Positions 2,472 through 16,616 of a stretch of 64,000 nt of DNA are shown here, piece after piece (within the stretch, counting starts at the first letter, position 1; each line of letters opens with the position of its first letter). Where the stretch lies: sequence record ON287372.1; one strand, 5' to 3'. A program made the translations under genes and the position numbers. The notes beneath the pieces are model-generated. The model saw only the letters and a program-made list of their open reading frames with translations. It had not been told where the DNA came from and ran no database searches.

Positions 2472-3752
2472 TTACCAACGACGGCGAGAACGACCTGCGT
2501 TATCAAACCAGTCTTCGTCGTTTCCTCGGCGATCGTCACGTCGGTCATCCCGACGATCATCACGTCCGAAACGATCGTAGTCACGGTCGTCACGACGGCG
2601 ATCACTGTAGCGATCATCACGATCGCGACTAAAGCGATCTTCACGACGATAGTCGCGATCATTTCCGCGACCAGACCGGCTACGCCAATCAACAGCTCTT
2701 TCTTCCTGGCGTGGTTCTTCCTGACGGATGAAGCGGTTGCCTTCGTCACGGGTACGAAGGATGCTAGTCCGGCCAGCAGAGACATCACGACGGAGAGTAC
2801 GACGCTCTTCACGTTTCACCTTTTCTTCTTGACGCGACTTCATGTCAGCCAACTCATCTTCGTTGGCGTCACCGATATTGCCATCCAGCGGCGGGATATC
2901 GTTTTTGTAGTCGTTCAGATCAGCCATGTTCTTCACCCAGTTGGTCTGGATGATACAATCTTCCAGTTCGGTGAAGTCTTCGCAGAACACTTTGGTGACC
3001 TTGTTCAGGTCTTTCGCCAGCAGCGAGAACGCCATCATCAGAGAATGGAAGTTCGGCGCTACCTGGGAACGGCTACCGTAAGAATAGTCGTCCATAGACG
3101 TGTCGATGTTCGGGAAGATACGACGCATGACTTTGAAGAAAGTGCTGCGGTCGCGGACCAGGAATGGAACGTCGAAGATTTTCTTCTCTGGAGAATGCTC
3201 TTCGTCCATGATCGGGAACGTGGTGGTGCAGACGCGAGGATACTCCTCGCCTTTCCACAGGCCGCTACGTTTAACGAACATGTTGACCAGGGCATACTGA
3301 CCTTTGAAGTCAACCTTCTCCTGGATCAGCTTCTGAACTGCAGCCAGAGTTTTCTTCGTTACATCCGGCACGTCGCGCAGATACTCGCGTTGTTCCGGAG
3401 TCAGCTTCGGATGCTTGTCAGTATCCAGCGCCAGGGTGAAGATGAAGTTCAGCAGAGTACAGGTCACGCGATACACGCGGTTAGATACCGCCAGCGCCAG
3501 ACGCTCTTGTACTTCCGACTTCTTACGACGCACGTTCTCAGACAGAGGATGGAACGGGATCTGCGTATCCCACTGAGGATCTTTCAACCATTCTTCGGTT
3601 GGGATGATCAGTGTCTTCTCACGCAGAGTGAACGGGGTTTTCACCCCGGCCTCGTTCAGTTCAACGTGCATCTTCGAGTTTACATCGAAGCCCAGGGACT
3701 TCATGATTTCGACGTAGATGGTCGTCAGTTTCTTTTTGTTCACTTCACTCAT
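2472..3752 (-). CDS. conserved jumbo-phage protein (phiKZ gp70 position) with Arg/Asp-rich low-complexity tail
   Basis: 426 aa. It follows the PicA-like gene and precedes the beta subunit. The C-terminal ~115 aa are RD/RE repeats. Confidence 0.7.
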   Translation of the reverse strand: MSEVNKKKLTTIYVEIMKSLGFDVNSKMHVELNEAGVKTPFTLREKTLIIPTEEWLKDPQWDTQIPFHPLSENVRRKKSEVQERLALAVSNRVYRVTCTLLNFIFTLALDTDKHPKLTPEQREYLRDVPDVTKKTLAAVQKLIQEKVDFKGQYALVNMFVKRSGLWKGEEYPRVCTTTFPIMDEEHSPEKKIFDVPFLVRDRSTFFKVMRRIFPNIDTSMDDYSYGSRSQVAPNFHSLMMAFSLLAKDLNKVTKVFCEDFTELEDCIIQTNWVKNMADLNDYKNDIPPLDGNIGDANEDELADMKSRQEEKVKREERRTLRRDVSAGRTSILRTRDEGNRFIRQEEPRQEERAVDWRSRSGRGNDRDYRREDRFSRDRDDRYSDRRRDDRDYDRFGRDDRRDDRRDDRRGNDEDWFDNAGRSRRRW

Positions 3753-11208: not shown

Positions 11209-11829
11209 TTACAGACGCTCTTTCAATACTGAAGTTGGATCAATGCCCTCTGCGATGCAATCATCGATCACATCCCAAGTTGCCAGAACATCCAGCTGTT
11301 CTTCCATGCTGATTGTCCCAACGCCCGGTACATTACAGCCACCGAAGGTATATTCACTCCACCATTCCCCTTTATCGTTTTGTTGAGCACGGCCATTGGT
11401 CGCCGCACGATAGAAGAAGTCTTCGTAACCTTTACCTTCCAGATCCCAACTACCAGGTTTACTACCCCAGGCTTCAATCGATTGGGTATCGAAACGGTTA
11501 CGGATGAATGGATACGCTAAGATCCAACGACGCATCGCCATCGGGGCTAACGCTACTTCGGTTTGATCATCGAGATACTGAATCACGTCATCGCGATACA
11601 TACCCCGTTTGGCTCGACCCAAGATACGCAACGAGGTGCGAACGGTTTCGTCATACATGGATTCAATCAACCCACGTGTACGTTGTAACCCTTCACGCGC
11701 TCGTGCAGATAATCCCCGGCTATATTCCTCTAACCGAGAATACGAACGCTCTATAGATTCACGATCCGGCATCCCAAATGCAGCTGCACGGAAAGAACGT
11801 TCATCTCCACTAATTATTGAAACTTTCAA
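11209..11829 (-). CDS. conserved hypothetical protein
   Basis: 206 aa. The TTG start abuts the stop of RNAP exon 2. Confidence 0.7.
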   Translation of the reverse strand: MKVSIISGDERSFRAAAFGMPDRESIERSYSRLEEYSRGLSARAREGLQRTRGLIESMYDETVRTSLRILGRAKRGMYRDDVIQYLDDQTEVALAPMAMRRWILAYPFIRNRFDTQSIEAWGSKPGSWDLEGKGYEDFFYRAATNGRAQQNDKGEWWSEYTFGGCNVPGVGTISMEEQLDVLATWDVIDDCIAEGIDPTSVLKERL

Positions 11830-12003
11830 TTACTTTCTCCGGTGAAGGAAGTTGTTTATCGTGGCACGGATCGGAGCACCGAGCGCCATGTTGTTGTTCA
11901 GCGAGTGCGGTTTGTTCAGATCGAACGTACCGGTATGCGGAGCCAACTTGCGAACGCGGTGATAGTCTGCCTTACTCAGGATCGGCATCCCGCCCAACAT
12001 ATC
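11830..12003 (-). CDS. exon 2 of nvRNAP beta'-like N-terminal subunit
   Basis: Not in the track. It reads DMLGGMPILSKADYHRVRKLAPHTGTFDLNKPHSLNNNMALGAPIRATINNFLHRRK*. Its first codon GAT supplies the last Asp of DFDGD. It is preceded by the intron's terminal G. Confidence 0.88.
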   Translation of the reverse strand, partial: DMLGGMPILSKADYHRVRKLAPHTGTFDLNKPHSLNNNMALGAPIRATINNFLHRRK

Positions 12004-13413
12004 CTTTTAAATTCCGCTCTCCTAAGAGAGTTTTCTTGTTTGAACACGATGACGAATTCTACCGCCCTGGACGGCTGTAGGTTCGTTTTATTTCCATTAT
12101 GCTGTCCGTGTTATCGGTATAAGTGAAAACCATACCTTCAAGCACTCGCAGCGTATTTTTAACTAATATCGTCGTTACCGCTTTCTTACTTAAACCTACT
12201 TCTTTGTAGAATGCACTGGCTGATGGGAATGTCTTCTCTCTGCCAGTTGATATCTCAAACGCATATACTTCACGACTGCCGTAATTCATTAGTCGTTCCA
12301 ATCGATCTGTTGCAAGTGTGCTGAATTCTTCCTCAGCATAGGTCACTCGGTATTTTCGATAAATAAGCGATCCCTTACTTCGATTTCGTAGCGAAACATT
12401 GACCAGCTTAGAAGTAAGGCCTTTATCTCGACATAGGTCGGATATAGACTTATATTCGGTTATCTCGTTGCTCGTCACGTCAAGTAGTTTAACCGCTCGC
12501 TTAGGCTTCCTGCCCTCGGAGTCTCGTTCAACTATTGACGCTTTCTTAAAGCCATGGGGAACGCGATCGTTTGTTGAGGCAAACTTAACTTTCCAACCAT
12601 TGAACCAACCACCAACACGAATCAAATCCCAGATATCTAAGGGATCTAGTCCAGTGTAGGCCGAACAATCGAAGACATTACGGAACGACACTCTTTCACC
12701 ATTCCACCCGTAGGCGAATATGTTGTCAAAGCTGGTACCGCCACCGAATATTGCGTAATGAATTGCATTCTCTTTAAGGGTTACCCACTCGAGATTTGAA
12801 TAGTGAGGATTACTCTTATCTAAATCACGATGGTTAACTACCATCTTCGTGAAGAAGGGTTCAGGATCGATATACGCCGCGGCCACTAATCGGTGTACAC
12901 CAAACGTTCTCCACACCCCATCGATTGGTATCGACGCAGTAGGATAGCCATCTCCATTCAGATACTGCTTTGAGATCTTCCCAGTCGAATCCTTGATGTC
13001 GCCATATGGGCTAATCATAAAACTTGGAGACGCTGGTATTGGTACCCAGTTCAAAATTCCTCCATTGTAAATCGTGTTCAAACGCCTGTTCGTTACGCAG
13101 GCCGATCTTACTGTCCAGGCAAGATCACGCGACCCTCTCGGACCGCCAGACTATATCTTCACTTGAATCGTTCAAGTGCTCCCCATTTTGACCCTCACTC
13201 GAGTGGTCTACTCTACTCACTACGTTTACCACATCCGTGTTACGTGCTTTCGATAGTCGTTGAACCTTCTCCATTTTACAGGAGCTTGGATGCTGATTGT
13301 CTCTATTAGATTGTTTTCAAGCATTCACGCTTACCGTTTCCAGTTACGTTGTAGCCAATCTACCTAGCAAGAGTTCCCAGCAGTTAAAGGAGTTTTACGA
13401 CAGCAATATACTT
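12004..13413 (-). mobile_element. group I self-splicing intron (1410 nt) with internal HNH endonuclease gene
   Basis: 5' exon ends in U (GACGGU) and pairs with IGS GCUGUC, giving a U.G at the splice site. P-like AACTGCTGGGAA, Q AATCAGCA, R GTTCAACGACTA and S AAGATATAGTCT are present. The last base is G. P10 UAUAUU/GAUAUG is possible. Confidence 0.92.
12059..13081 (-). CDS. intron-encoded HNH homing endonuclease
   Basis: 340 aa with VHRLVAAAY...VVNHRDLDKSNPHYSNLEWVTLKEN (HNH). The C-terminal region has repeats resembling NUMOD1/IENR1 DNA-binding modules. It sits after the S element. Confidence 0.9.
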   Translation of the reverse strand: MNTIYNGGILNWVPIPASPSFMISPYGDIKDSTGKISKQYLNGDGYPTASIPIDGVWRTFGVHRLVAAAYIDPEPFFTKMVVNHRDLDKSNPHYSNLEWVTLKENAIHYAIFGGGTSFDNIFAYGWNGERVSFRNVFDCSAYTGLDPLDIWDLIRVGGWFNGWKVKFASTNDRVPHGFKKASIVERDSEGRKPKRAVKLLDVTSNEITEYKSISDLCRDKGLTSKLVNVSLRNRSKGSLIYRKYRVTYAEEEFSTLATDRLERLMNYGSREVYAFEISTGREKTFPSASAFYKEVGLSKKAVTTILVKNTLRVLEGMVFTYTDNTDSIMEIKRTYSRPGR

Positions 13414-14691
13414 ACCGTCGAAGTCACAGTTTGGTGCACGTAATACCAGCAGCGATAGGCCGATAGTGTTATCGTGAACATCCCGTTTGATCTTGGTGAC
13501 GAACAGGTTTTGGATTGAACGTAAGTTCAACGTTGGGTTACGACCCAGGAGCTGAGGAAGCCCTCGTTTACCACCGATGGTAGTGAACGGAGACTCATCA
13601 ATCAACTCATCCAACAATGTTGAGATAAGCGGATTGTATTTACCTACCGAAGAAATCAGCAGGTCTTCAGAATCCTGTATCGTGAATCCACGACGAACCA
13701 GTTTACCGATGAGGTGAGTGTGATAGACGCCTAATGCAATCCCCCAAGGCATGTGCATCTCTTCGTAATCGTGAGAGCCAGCGATAGAGGTTACAACGCC
13801 ACGATATGTCGGACCAGTACGTGAGCCATAAATCTGCTTACGGAACCAGCCTTCCTTTTTACCCAAGATGTTTTTGTCGATATACTCACGATACTTCGCC
13901 AGCATCATCAGTGCACGGAATACGTGATATTCCTTCGTGACCTGATAGCGCGGCTCGTCTTTACCGACCAGGCTATAAATAGCACGGGCTGCATCGACTA
14001 CATCTGCGTAACCTTCTGCACAGAACCGAGTTTTATTACTCAGCTCGGTAATGATGGAACGACGAGATGGTAACGGGAGTACCGTCGGGAATAGAAGCTC
14101 CCTGAACTTATCGAAATACACCAGCGCTTCATTGCGGTTTGCTGACGGCTTGAAGATCTTGCTGTCTACCATGGCGCTGAGAATATCGTCGAAGTGTTCG
14201 ATGAAGTGGTTATACCCACGTGGGATATTCAGTTCTTTGAACCGACGGAATGTCGCACTGGTTTCGTTACCTGGCTTATACTTCGTGTTACACAGCCATT
14301 CGATTGCCGAGAAGTTCTCTTGGGTGAAGTTCTTCAACAGCATAACCAGAGCATTGATACGGATGAACGCATGAACTCCGTTTGGAGCACGCAGCCATAC
14401 AGAAGATTTAAACCCTCGATCGATTGGGCTCATCACTTCAGTCTGACATTTTGGACATACCGTGTTGGGGATATCGGGATCGTTCGATGAATTATACCGA
14501 CCATGAGTGTGGCCACACTCACAAGCAGGTAATGTTTCAATGAAGTCGTCGCTATACTCAGTCATGGTCAGTTCTTTTACTGGATCCGTGCCTTCGTAAT
14601 GAGCGGGGTCGATATCATTGAGGATGATTGGCGGACGAGGCAGAGCAGCAATATCCCTGTCGTAATCCGGATTTAACAGATAAACACCCAA
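13414..14691 (-). CDS. exon 1 of nvRNAP beta'-like N-terminal subunit (phiKZ gp55-like)
   Basis: Zn-binding CECG...CPKC, RNPTL and APNCDFDG. The track's C-terminus KYIAVVKLL is intron sequence. The spliced product is 483 aa. Confidence 0.9.
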
Positions 14692-14727
14692 TTACATTCC
14701 CCTCTTTTCTGAAAAGATAGAAAAAAA

Positions 14728-14751
14728 GAAAGGAGGGAAAACCCTCCTTTC
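14728..14751 (-). terminator. intrinsic terminator after chimallin
   Basis: GAAAGGAGGG-AAAA-CCCTCCTTTC with a U-tract. Confidence 0.8.
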
Positions 14752-14795
14752 TCACCCCTTGCGGGATTGATCAATTACTCACTAAACCGGAAGGC

Positions 14796-16616
14796 TTAGA
14801 AGTAATCGCTACGGCCATTACCGCGCATGCGGAACGCTTTACCGGCGTAACCGGAAGTTGCGTACTGGGATTGGAAACCACGACGGAAACGAGTATCCTG
14901 GTAGATACCGTCAGCCTGGGTAACCATGCCCACTTTCTCTGCGGCGTTGGTCAGCGCGAACAGCCACTGGGTGTTAATCAGTACTGGTACGCCGTGACCG
15001 GTGATGCGGTAGCTACCGCCGGTGAACTGATCGATGATCTCTTCCATTTTCGCCAGGCGAACTTCGATTGGCAGAGAAGAGTCGTTCTGGCAACGATCCC
15101 AGTCCTGAACCATACGCGGATCTTTCTTGCCGAAGGCAGTCACGATTGCGTAGTAGTCGATCTCGGTCAGAGAACGGATCTGGCCGCGGTCGTCAGTCCA
15201 GTCACCCAGCAGGATGACACGGTCTTGGCGTTCGCCGATGTCCAGAGGTTTGACGCGGTTCAGTTCCAGCTGAGCGCTGAACTCGTTATCAGTCAGGTTA
15301 TCGCCAGCGATTACCAGCATGTCCGCGTAAGTATCGCGGTTAGCGTTCATCGGGTCGGTTGCCTGCAGCAGCAGTTTCTGCTGTTGGGTGGTGATACCGG
15401 TTTCATCGATCAGGACGGTGACGAAGTTCTGATCCGGCTGAATAACAACATCAGTCAGGTCAGCCCACTCAACGTCATCCAGAACGTCTGGTACGTCTTT
15501 GAACTCTTCGTCCAGTTCGTAGGTCAGAGCGACCGGGGTACGCAGTTTGGCGTTATCGCCAGCAGGTTTCAGACCAGCGGTCAGAACGTTTTCGTTGATC
15601 AGGACAGGGATCTGAGCCAGCGCCAAGCACAGGTGCTCCGGAGAAGCTTCGTGCTTCATGTGGGTGATGACCAGATTTTTGCCGTAGATCTGACGAGCTT
15701 CGTCTTCTTCGCGCTGAGAACGGTAGCGAGAACGACGGGACTGACCGTCCGGGCGGCCCAGGTAGGTGACGTCAACGAAACCTTCGATGGTTGCGATGTC
15801 CATTGCGCCTTCAGCGTTTTCCAGTGCGTTAGAAACACGGTTACGCTGGCCTTTGGTTGCCAGGGATACTTCTACGGACAGATCGCGACGACGCGGACGC
15901 TCAGTGATTTCGTCGTGCGCATCACCTTGGTTGTAGATGACGCGAGAAACGAATTCGCTGCGCTGTGCATCGATTGCAGCGCCCAGGTTGAAGTGCTCGG
16001 TACGCAGCATGTTGCCCAGGTAGCCGAATACCGCGTTCACGGCGCTGATGATCAGATCTTCGCATTTCGCTTCGGTCAGCTGTGCGTTGGTGATTGCCAC
16101 CGCGCCCATCTGAACGATGTCGCCGGCCAGGTCAGGAGCTTTACGGCCGATGATTTCTGCCAGCTTGATCTGATACGCGTCGGTGAACTGATCGTTCGCT
16201 ACTGCGGAGTACTGACGTTCGCTACGGTTGCCGACTTCAACGGATTGCTTAGGCAGAGCCTGGCCACCGGTGAACAGCAGAGTCAGAGCGCAGGTAGTTG
16301 CGATGCCGCCGGTAACAGCTTTACCTACGACTACTGCCGCGTCCAGTTTCATTTTGGTTTCGCCGGAAGTTGCCGGGATAACCGCCCAGGTCAGTTGACC
16401 GCCAGCAGACAGGGCTGCTTTGTTCGCGTCGTGGTAAGCGTTGAAACGCTCGATGAAAGTGGTCAGCTCGTTACCAGATACGCCGGCTTGAACCAGTTGG
16501 CCGCTTTCGAAGATGTCCGTGTTCAGGCGACGCTGAGAATGCTGTTGATTACCCTTTGGTGCTGCAGCACGTGGAGAGTCTTGGGTTTCGTTAACGTTGT
16601 TGTCGGTCAAAGCCAT
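14796..16616 (-). CDS. chmA: chimallin, major phage nuclear shell protein
   Basis: 606 aa from ATG 16616 (RBS AAGGAG). It lies between the beta' gene and the DNA polymerase block, has high-expression codon bias, disordered termini and a chimallin-like LGDWTD...RSLTEIDY segment. Confidence 0.85.
   Translation of the reverse strand: MALTDNNVNETQDSPRAAAPKGNQQHSQRRLNTDIFESGQLVQAGVSGNELTTFIERFNAYHDANKAALSAGGQLTWAVIPATSGETKMKLDAAVVVGKAVTGGIATTCALTLLFTGGQALPKQSVEVGNRSERQYSAVANDQFTDAYQIKLAEIIGRKAPDLAGDIVQMGAVAITNAQLTEAKCEDLIISAVNAVFGYLGNMLRTEHFNLGAAIDAQRSEFVSRVIYNQGDAHDEITERPRRRDLSVEVSLATKGQRNRVSNALENAEGAMDIATIEGFVDVTYLGRPDGQSRRSRYRSQREEDEARQIYGKNLVITHMKHEASPEHLCLALAQIPVLINENVLTAGLKPAGDNAKLRTPVALTYELDEEFKDVPDVLDDVEWADLTDVVIQPDQNFVTVLIDETGITTQQQKLLLQATDPMNANRDTYADMLVIAGDNLTDNEFSAQLELNRVKPLDIGERQDRVILLGDWTDDRGQIRSLTEIDYYAIVTAFGKKDPRMVQDWDRCQNDSSLPIEVRLAKMEEIIDQFTGGSYRITGHGVPVLINTQWLFALTNAAEKVGMVTQADGIYQDTRFRRGFQSQYATSGYAGKAFRMRGNGRSDYF

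Follow-up and report, generated by a model that had tools for sequence, protein, structure and literature searches.

The stretch considered here, a window of 64,000 nucleotides from sequence record ON287372.1, carries on its minus strand a gene for a phage RNA polymerase (RNAP) subunit that is divided, within the codons for its catalytic aspartate motif, by what is very probably a mobile group I intron with its own homing endonuclease gene. Over 11700-14800 the window shows 100% identity to Serratia phage vB_SmaS-Totoro (ON287372.1), and the window coordinates are those of the record, which has 278,767 bp and belongs to the genus Moabitevirus. In July 2019 Totoro was obtained, alongside the phage Kodama, through plaque assay with S. 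marcescens LVF3 as host; the paper on it, which does not mention introns, lists it as a myovirus (PMC10070969). The name in GenBank has the vB_SmaS of a siphovirus, while the same paper has it as the myovirus vB_SmaM-Totoro (PMC10070969). As the gene upstream of the split one is for the nuclear shell protein (PHROG 4795, E 4.5e-54), Totoro can be counted among the nucleus-forming jumbo phages with the phiKZ gene order gp54-gp55. No second gp55-type gene was found in the 64-kb window.

The two exons and where they join

Exon 1 (13414-14691, on the minus strand, as are all the features of this locus) has 426 codons for the non-virion RNAP beta'-N, the homologue of phiKZ gp55, and its terminus is TGT GAC TTC GAC GGT (...NCDFDG), with 13414 as last base. 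Beyond it the unspliced continuation, AAG TAT ATT..., soon meets a stop, so that the open reading frame (ORF) 14691-13384 is of 435 amino acids and ends NCDFDGKYIAVVKLL (the tail of this minus-strand frame, up to the stop, being APNCDFDGKYIAVVKLL). Exon 2 (11830-12003), which is unannotated, follows directly on a G at 12004; from 12003 it reads GAT ATG TTG GGC and is open for 57 codons until the stop at 11830-11832, its first codon, GAT, being that for the third catalytic Asp.

Each exon was searched on its own, and for the join we relied on DNA alignment with an intronless allele. Exon 1 matches positions 1-421 of the 478 in the profile of PHROG 2987 (RNA polymerase beta subunit; E 1.9e-140), and exon 2 abuts that match, taking up the profile at 422 and following it to 476 (E 9e-6). 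With the phiKZ gp55 structure, 7OGP_A, the exon 1 alignment (E 8e-55) stops on DFDG, at residue 440, and residues 17-56 of exon 2 align with residues 457-496 (E 8.5e-4), in register with exon 1. Pfam gave no match for either exon, and the family was assigned via PHROGs and the Protein Data Bank (PDB).

How exactly can the junction be placed? The intronless allele, from phage Moabite (MK994515), is a single gene of 483 amino acids reading NCDFDG^DMLGG, where ^ marks the insertion site (surrounding protein, NCDFDGDMLGGMPILSK), and in a three-way DNA alignment the entire 1410-nucleotide Totoro insert falls between the Moabite GGC and GAT codons. Because the insert is bracketed exactly, the junction is fixed to the nucleotide. 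The 426 residues of exon 1 and the 57 of exon 2 sum to the same 483 as in Moabite, and it is only across the join that DFDGD is complete, exon 1 giving DFDG and exon 2 the final D, whereas the unspliced ORF has DFDGK. The codon differences between Totoro and Moabite in exon 2 are 22 synonymous to 3 non-synonymous, and, as synonymous differences dominate, exon 2 is evidently translated in the frame that exon 1 sets, and is under purifying selection.

The coordinates given in the initial annotation (14691-13414 and 12003-11830 for the exons, 13413-12004 for the intron) all hold in the alignment to Moabite, as do its 483-residue joined subunit and, for the unspliced product, DFDGK without the third Asp. 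It had also foreseen that automated annotation would miss exon 2: GenBank has for Totoro the truncated coding sequence (CDS) of 435 amino acids and the HNH gene, and no feature over exon 2.

Ribozyme core and splice-site pairings

The intron is of 1410 nucleotides (12004-13413); it opens with the A that follows the splice-site U and closes with the terminal G. The group I search with an Infernal-type scan, as suggested in the initial annotation, gave a single Rfam match in the whole window, to RF00028 at 13423-13129 on the minus strand. This is the ribozyme core P1-P9 (13129-13423), aligned over the full model, 1-253, and scoring 61.5 bits where the gathering score is 50 (E is 1.9e-14 in a search of the region, 3.5e-13 in one of the whole window). 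The claim that a group I intron cuts DFDG^D is thus upheld, with the insert lying between the codons for Gly and the third Asp, and so is the visibility of P1 with its U.G, of P, Q, R and S, of P10 and of the terminal G, as follows from the Rfam alignment and the pairings.

The 5′ strand of P1 is GACGGU, the last six bases of exon 1 (13414-13419), with the splice-site U at 13414. All six pair with the GCUGUC of the internal guide sequence UAUAUU-GCUGUC (13399-13410; the P10 strand, then the 3′ strand of P1), U.G being at the splice site, and UAUAUU, directly 5′ of GCUGUC, pairs 6/6 with the GAUAUG that opens exon 2, as P10. Of the conserved elements of the core, P (the 5′ side of P3/P4; 13373-13385) is AACUGCUGGGAAC, aligned to the Rfam consensus AAUUGCGGGAAA, and Q (13288-13298) is AAUCAGCAUCC. 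R, the 5′ side of P7 (13254-13266), is GGUUCAACGACUA and is invariant in Totoro, Kodama, Remus and phiKZ; S, the 3′ side of P7 (13147-13160), is GAAGAUAUAGUCUG. The insert of 66 nucleotides after R fits the P7.1/P7.2 extension and so suggests subgroup IA. The terminal, or omega, G is at 12004, and all six of the homologous introns compared end in G.

Exon 2 starts GACAUG in Kodama, GACACU in Miami, GAUUCC in HHBS47_1, GACGCU in pEa_SNUABM_54 and GAUAUG in Madawaska, and the matching guides are, in the same order, UAAGUU, CGUGUU, CGAAUU, AGCGUU and UAUAUU. P10 therefore co-varies with exon 2 across six lineages including Totoro, with 5-6 of the 6 pairs kept in the other five. In the alignment of six introns the splice-site U.G is invariant (6/6), and the P1 of phiKZ, which differs, is kept via compensatory changes. 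RNAalifold on six cores supports P1, P3, P4, P5 and P6; its counts for P7-P8 were left unused, MAFFT having misaligned that region of Miami and HHBS47_1.

Intron periphery and the endonuclease gene

After P7 there are three hairpins (13084-13146), P9 with 7 bp and a GAGA loop, P9.1 and P9.2, in a ViennaRNA cofold of the ORF flanks that reaches -55 kcal/mol. They are followed by the 5′ arm (13071-13083) of a perfect 13-bp inverted repeat, whose 3′ arm (12038-12050) lies 1020 nucleotides away; the helix closes a loop in which the endonuclease gene is enclosed. The ORF is bracketed by helices of other sequence in pEa_SNUABM_54, with 10 bp, and in HHBS47_1, with 9 bp. A terminal hairpin, CUCUC-UUAG-GAGAG (12017-12030), seen in the sequence and in the cofold, stands 13 nucleotides ahead of the 3′ splice site.

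The gene within the loop (12059-13054) is for an I-HmuI-like HNH homing endonuclease. Pfam HNH_3 is matched at 29.8 bits (cut-off 24.8), with NUMOD1 at 20.8 against a cut-off of 22.8 and I-HmuI_NUMOD-like at 16.7 against 27; PHROG 59 is matched at E 6e-34 and I-HmuI itself (PDB 1U3E) at E 3.6e-10, with a weak second stretch, C-terminal, at 1U3E residues 127-170. N74, H75, N87, N96 and H99 are invariant when the protein is aligned with five others, PhiPA3 gp210 and phiKZ gp56 among them, and these residues include the equivalent of gp210 H82, mutation of which abolishes nicking (PMC11620839). Where does the protein begin? The HNH assignment made in the initial annotation stands, but the 340 amino acids there given to it are those of the longest possible ORF, from a TTG at 13081 that falls within the 13-bp helix, and GenBank starts at an ATG, 13018, which removes the N-terminal M-x-W-x-P-I-P that homologues conserve. 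Translation probably begins with the TTG at 13054, which would give 331 amino acids; this start is favoured because homologues begin M-x-x-x-I-P-G and because GGAGG (13063-13059) precedes it.

Three states of one site within Moabitevirus

Phages of the genus differ in what is present at the insertion site. It is empty in Moabite, Haymo and vB_ParM-25; in Kodama, BUCT660, 2050HW and Yaphecito it has an intron of 296 nucleotides that lacks an ORF (57 bits in Rfam for that of Kodama); and in Totoro it has the endonuclease-bearing intron. Since Yaphecito is of the same species, Moabitevirus moabite, as Moabite and Haymo, and alone of the three has the intron, its presence or absence is polymorphic even within a species.

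Though exon 1 of the group with the ORF-less intron is ~99% identical to that of Moabite, in its four members the final 31 nucleotides of exon 1 have 6-7 changes and the opening 12 of exon 2 have 4, every one of them synonymous, as against 0-4 changes per 60 nucleotides elsewhere. The changes nearest the site are common to this group and Totoro, which have TTC GAC GGT^...TTG GGC where Moabite has TTT GAT GGC^...CTC GGT. Such a synonymous cluster at the site is the pattern expected of a co-conversion tract, and, since the empty allele has C at the position concerned, the tract would also be what supplies the U for the splice-site U.G. A further sign of movement comes from comparing Totoro with Kodama: identity is 85% in the exons, yet the intron cores have in common a run of 190 nucleotides free of differences, which argues for lateral exchange of the intron after the two had diverged.

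The records of these relatives treat the gene variously. Kodama has the same truncated CDS as Totoro and, again, an unannotated exon 2; for 2050HW, BUCT660 and Yaphecito each exon has a 'RpoBC' CDS of its own, with no join, and inside the ORF-less intron of Yaphecito a spurious CDS of 40 amino acids is annotated.

The same and neighbouring sites in other phages

The exact DFDG^D-type site is also occupied in AR9, Madawaska, Miami, HHBS47_1 and pEa_SNUABM_54. Alike in arrangement are Miami (Klebsiella), HHBS47_1 (Pseudomonas) and pEa_SNUABM_54 (Erwinia), where the gene order is as in Totoro, i.e., shell protein, exon 1 ending GAC GGT, core, HNH gene and exon 2. Their endonucleases are the closest relatives of Totoro's, at ~30% identity over 95-97% of the length, their cores score 40-47 bits in Rfam, and two of the three have a long-range helix round the ORF; cores and endonucleases alike are strongly diverged from those of Totoro. 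In the annotation of all three, exon 1 and the short exon-2 ORF are separate genes. The Miami endonuclease (locus positions 2489-3463) is unannotated, and, because in it Gln replaces the first His of the G-V-H-R-L-V seen in the others, it may be impaired.

In Bacillus phage AR9 (g270/g271) it is again the non-virion beta'-N gene that is interrupted, and at the same site, GAC TAT GAC GGT^...G^GAC (DYDG^D), by an intron with a guide of the TTGCCGTC type and an HNH endonuclease gene. For g270 GenBank does give a two-exon join, and the length of the DYDG^D join is that of the solved subunit, the 426 amino acids of PDB 7S01 chain d. Unlike Totoro, AR9 has a Gram-positive host and is not nucleus-forming, its endonuclease gene is mid-intron, upstream of R, rather than in the P9 periphery, and its P10 pairing is, by our reading, weak (2 bp, compared with 6/6). 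In Staphylococcus jumbo phage Madawaska a related core, 78.5% identical over 163 nucleotides, is at GAT TTT GAC GGT^GAT ATG, but of the virion beta'-N gene (gp113, annotated as a join), and with its endonuclease gene in the P1 loop. That Madawaska might have the same intron together with the same endonuclease was considered and rejected, its endonuclease being unrelated to Totoro's (best E 0.054).

What of phiKZ itself? The orthologous gene (gp55/gp56/PHIKZ056.1) is beside the chimallin gene and has a group I intron (75.6 bits; positions 14160-15545 of the NC_004629 locus examined) with an HNH gene, gp56, whose product is 20% identical to the Totoro endonuclease in the multiple alignment; spliced gp55 has been solved as one chain, 7OGP_A. 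The initial annotation was right that an intron splits gp55, but not that it does so at the motif: the insertion is 15 nucleotides upstream, between ...KAPN and ADFDGD (AAT^GCT GAT TTT GAC GGC GAT), and so the phiKZ motif is uncut and wholly in exon 2 while that of Totoro is cut. The gp56 gene is 5′ of the ribozyme core, and the P1 sequence differs from that of Totoro. Given the 15-nucleotide offset, two neighbouring sites in the gp55-type gene are used by different introns.

I-HmuI, from the intron of the SPO1 DNA polymerase gene (PDB 1U3E), is a likeness of another kind. It too is encoded in a phage intron, and its N-terminal HNH part and, weakly, its C-terminal helix-turn-helix part align with Totoro's protein in sequence, the Totoro protein being about twice as long (331 amino acids to 174) with additional middle modules. 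Matches of ~97% by megablast link core blocks (13354-13248, minus strand) to introns of Staphylococcus Twort-like phages and Silviavirus. In the alignment the blocks are of 33 and 51 nucleotides, 97-100% identical (Remus locus positions 2501-2654), and those introns are in a recA-like 'DNA repair protein' gene, have their own endonuclease and differ in the remainder. Cross-phylum transfer from Staphylococcus phages was rejected, as only two short core blocks are involved, and the matches are treated as family conservation; the Remus intron locus had no Rfam score at E <= 0.01. Judged by these sequence comparisons, DxDG^D is a known and widely used intron home at which the endonuclease is exchanged independently of the core.

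PhiPA3 gp210 and a second intron in Totoro

A comparable system is that of PhiPA3, where the intron-encoded gp210 interrupts the virion RNAP beta subunit gene (gp211/209) and nicks phiKZ gp178 (Birkholz et al. 2024, Science; PMC11620839). As in Totoro, a group I intron with an HNH nicking endonuclease is in an RNAP gene of a jumbo phage, beside the codons for catalytic aspartates, and gp210 is a distant homologue of the Totoro endonuclease (29% identity over 63% of the query, E 5e-10), with H82 conserved. The two differ in that the Totoro gene is for non-virion beta' and that of PhiPA3 for virion beta, and in that a competitive effect of gp210 against phiKZ has been demonstrated by experiment (PMC11620839), Totoro being known from its sequence. 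The initial annotation had cited gp210 as its precedent for interference, which stands, though in a different gene.

Is there then a counterpart in Totoro of the PhiPA3 gene arrangement itself? Outside the window, at ~150.3-152.1 kb of the record, Totoro has another group I intron, which Rfam places at 150461-150833 on the minus strand with 49 bits (E 2e-12). The gene interrupted, after ...TAT GAC GAT, is one annotated as 'RNA polymerase beta subunit' (TOTORO_02210/02190; locus 149263-155457), and the endonuclease of this intron, TOTORO_02200, an HNH protein of 413 amino acids, matches gp210 at E 2e-25. On the strength of these matches, it is this second intron that is the direct counterpart of the PhiPA3 gp211/210/209 system. 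It is present in Kodama too, whereas Moabite gave no group I match at all in Rfam.

Interpretation and its alternatives

Taken together, these data argue, with a probability that we would put at about 0.93, for a mobile group I intron, probably of subgroup IA, in the non-virion beta'-N gene of Totoro, between the codons for the Gly and the third Asp of the Mg-binding DFDGD. The guide, UAUAUU-GCUGUC, would pair both with the end of exon 1 (P1, with its U.G) and with the start of exon 2 (P10), and transesterification, initiated by guanosine and with attack immediately 3′ of the terminal G, 12004, would ligate GACGGU and GAUAUG. The predicted junction is GACGGTGATATG and the product would be the subunit of 483 amino acids with DFDGD intact. 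An unspliced message would instead give the 435-residue product ending DFDGKYIAVVKLL, and, because that would be without the third Asp and the final 57 residues, splicing is presumably needed for a working middle/late polymerase. With exon 2 under purifying selection and Totoro forming plaques, it is probably essential, as the initial annotation had proposed. By analogy with I-HmuI and PhiPA3 gp210, the endonuclease, encoded in the loop that the 13-bp helix closes in the P9 periphery, should nick intronless alleles and, through the ensuing gene conversion, drive homing. The anatomy of the element, its exact junction, its conservation and co-variation and the population signatures of mobility are directly observed.

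Several considerations weigh on the other side. The spliced junction of Totoro is predicted from DNA, with splicing, and its independence of protein, being deduced from features of the intron; that the non-virion polymerase is essential is taken from phages of the phiKZ type, and the putative activity and target of the endonuclease from its homologues. The start of the endonuclease is uncertain among 13081, 13054 and 13018, with a spacer of only 4 nucleotides between GGAGG and the favoured TTG. Lastly, of the 24 bases around the site 6 are not the same in the Moabite allele as in the exon join of Totoro, and that allele may or may not be cut.

Could a genuine intron at this place need a protein helper in vivo, either an RNA chaperone of host or phage or the endonuclease itself as maturase? 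Some group I introns do require protein cofactors, the Totoro intron is long, having a peripheral loop of 1 kb, and its autocatalysis is a prediction from sequence. Nevertheless, its core is complete and scores above the Rfam cut-off, and self-splicing in vitro is known for phage introns that have the P7.1/P7.2 extension, those of T4, Twort and SPO1 among them. As for a maturase, four viable close relatives live with the same core, identical in the 190-nucleotide run, and no ORF, and so the endonuclease is dispensable for splicing and a maturase role unnecessary. We consider dependence on a helper to be improbable.

Still less credible is a decayed intron that no longer splices, leaving either a pseudogene or two fragments translated separately. 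The stand-alone CDS of 435 amino acids in GenBank, and the ATG that comes right after GAT at the start of exon 2, give it some appearance of plausibility. But the third catalytic Asp would then be in neither ORF, as GAT is upstream of that ATG, which is also without a ribosome-binding site; purifying selection acts strongly on exon 2 in the frame of exon 1; P1, P10, the terminal G and the core are intact and co-varying; and Totoro forms plaques with no other gp55-type gene in the window. We regard such decay as very unlikely.

A shift of both boundaries by one base, such that GG at 13415 closes exon 1 and GGAT from 12004 opens exon 2 with the junction GACGGGGATATG, would again specify Gly-Asp, the GGG GAT join encoding the identical protein so that the intronless protein cannot by itself discriminate. 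This is scarcely to be believed, as the base ahead of the 5′ splice site would be G and the intron would end in A, breaking both the U and the terminal-G requirements that, of the two placements, only that of the initial annotation obeys, and as U.G is invariant in six homologous introns and P10 is 6/6 only in the unshifted register.

Significance

The Totoro element, a group I intron that interrupts the polymerase motif, is real and was previously unannotated; the type of system was already known, as the initial annotation acknowledged, and there is nothing new in principle. The practical value is in re-annotation. ON287372.1 gives the polymerase subunit as 435 amino acids without the third catalytic Asp, with exon 2 omitted, and proteomes and core-gene sets derived from Totoro, Kodama and other misannotated records carry a broken subunit.

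A wider reading is tempting and we put it forward as a tentative one, on balance doubtful, namely that DxDG^D is a homing hotspot of jumbo phages and, jointly, that the Totoro endonuclease is an interference weapon against intronless Moabiteviruses. As to the first part, GAY-TWY-GAC-GGT^GAY may be used by one related family of introns in phages of Gram-positive hosts (AR9, Madawaska) and of Gram-negative ones (the Serratia, Klebsiella, Pseudomonas and Erwinia phages), with unrelated endonuclease genes repeatedly invading different loops. As to the second, the Totoro endonuclease may act on intronless Moabiteviruses that share a Serratia cell with Totoro, much as gp210 of PhiPA3 acts on its competitor. 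If this were true, the identical 190-nucleotide core of Totoro and Kodama, both isolated on the same host strain in July 2019, would mark a very recent natural transfer.

In the phage nucleus transcription and splicing are apart from translation. Moabitevirus holds, at one site, all three stages of the homing cycle, the empty, the endonuclease-bearing and the ORF-less, and shows besides them conversion tracts and a near-identical core in phages whose exons are 15% diverged, two of these phages, Totoro and Kodama, being from the same host strain. It is thus a convenient natural system for intron homing, and for competition by endonucleases, inside the phage nucleus.

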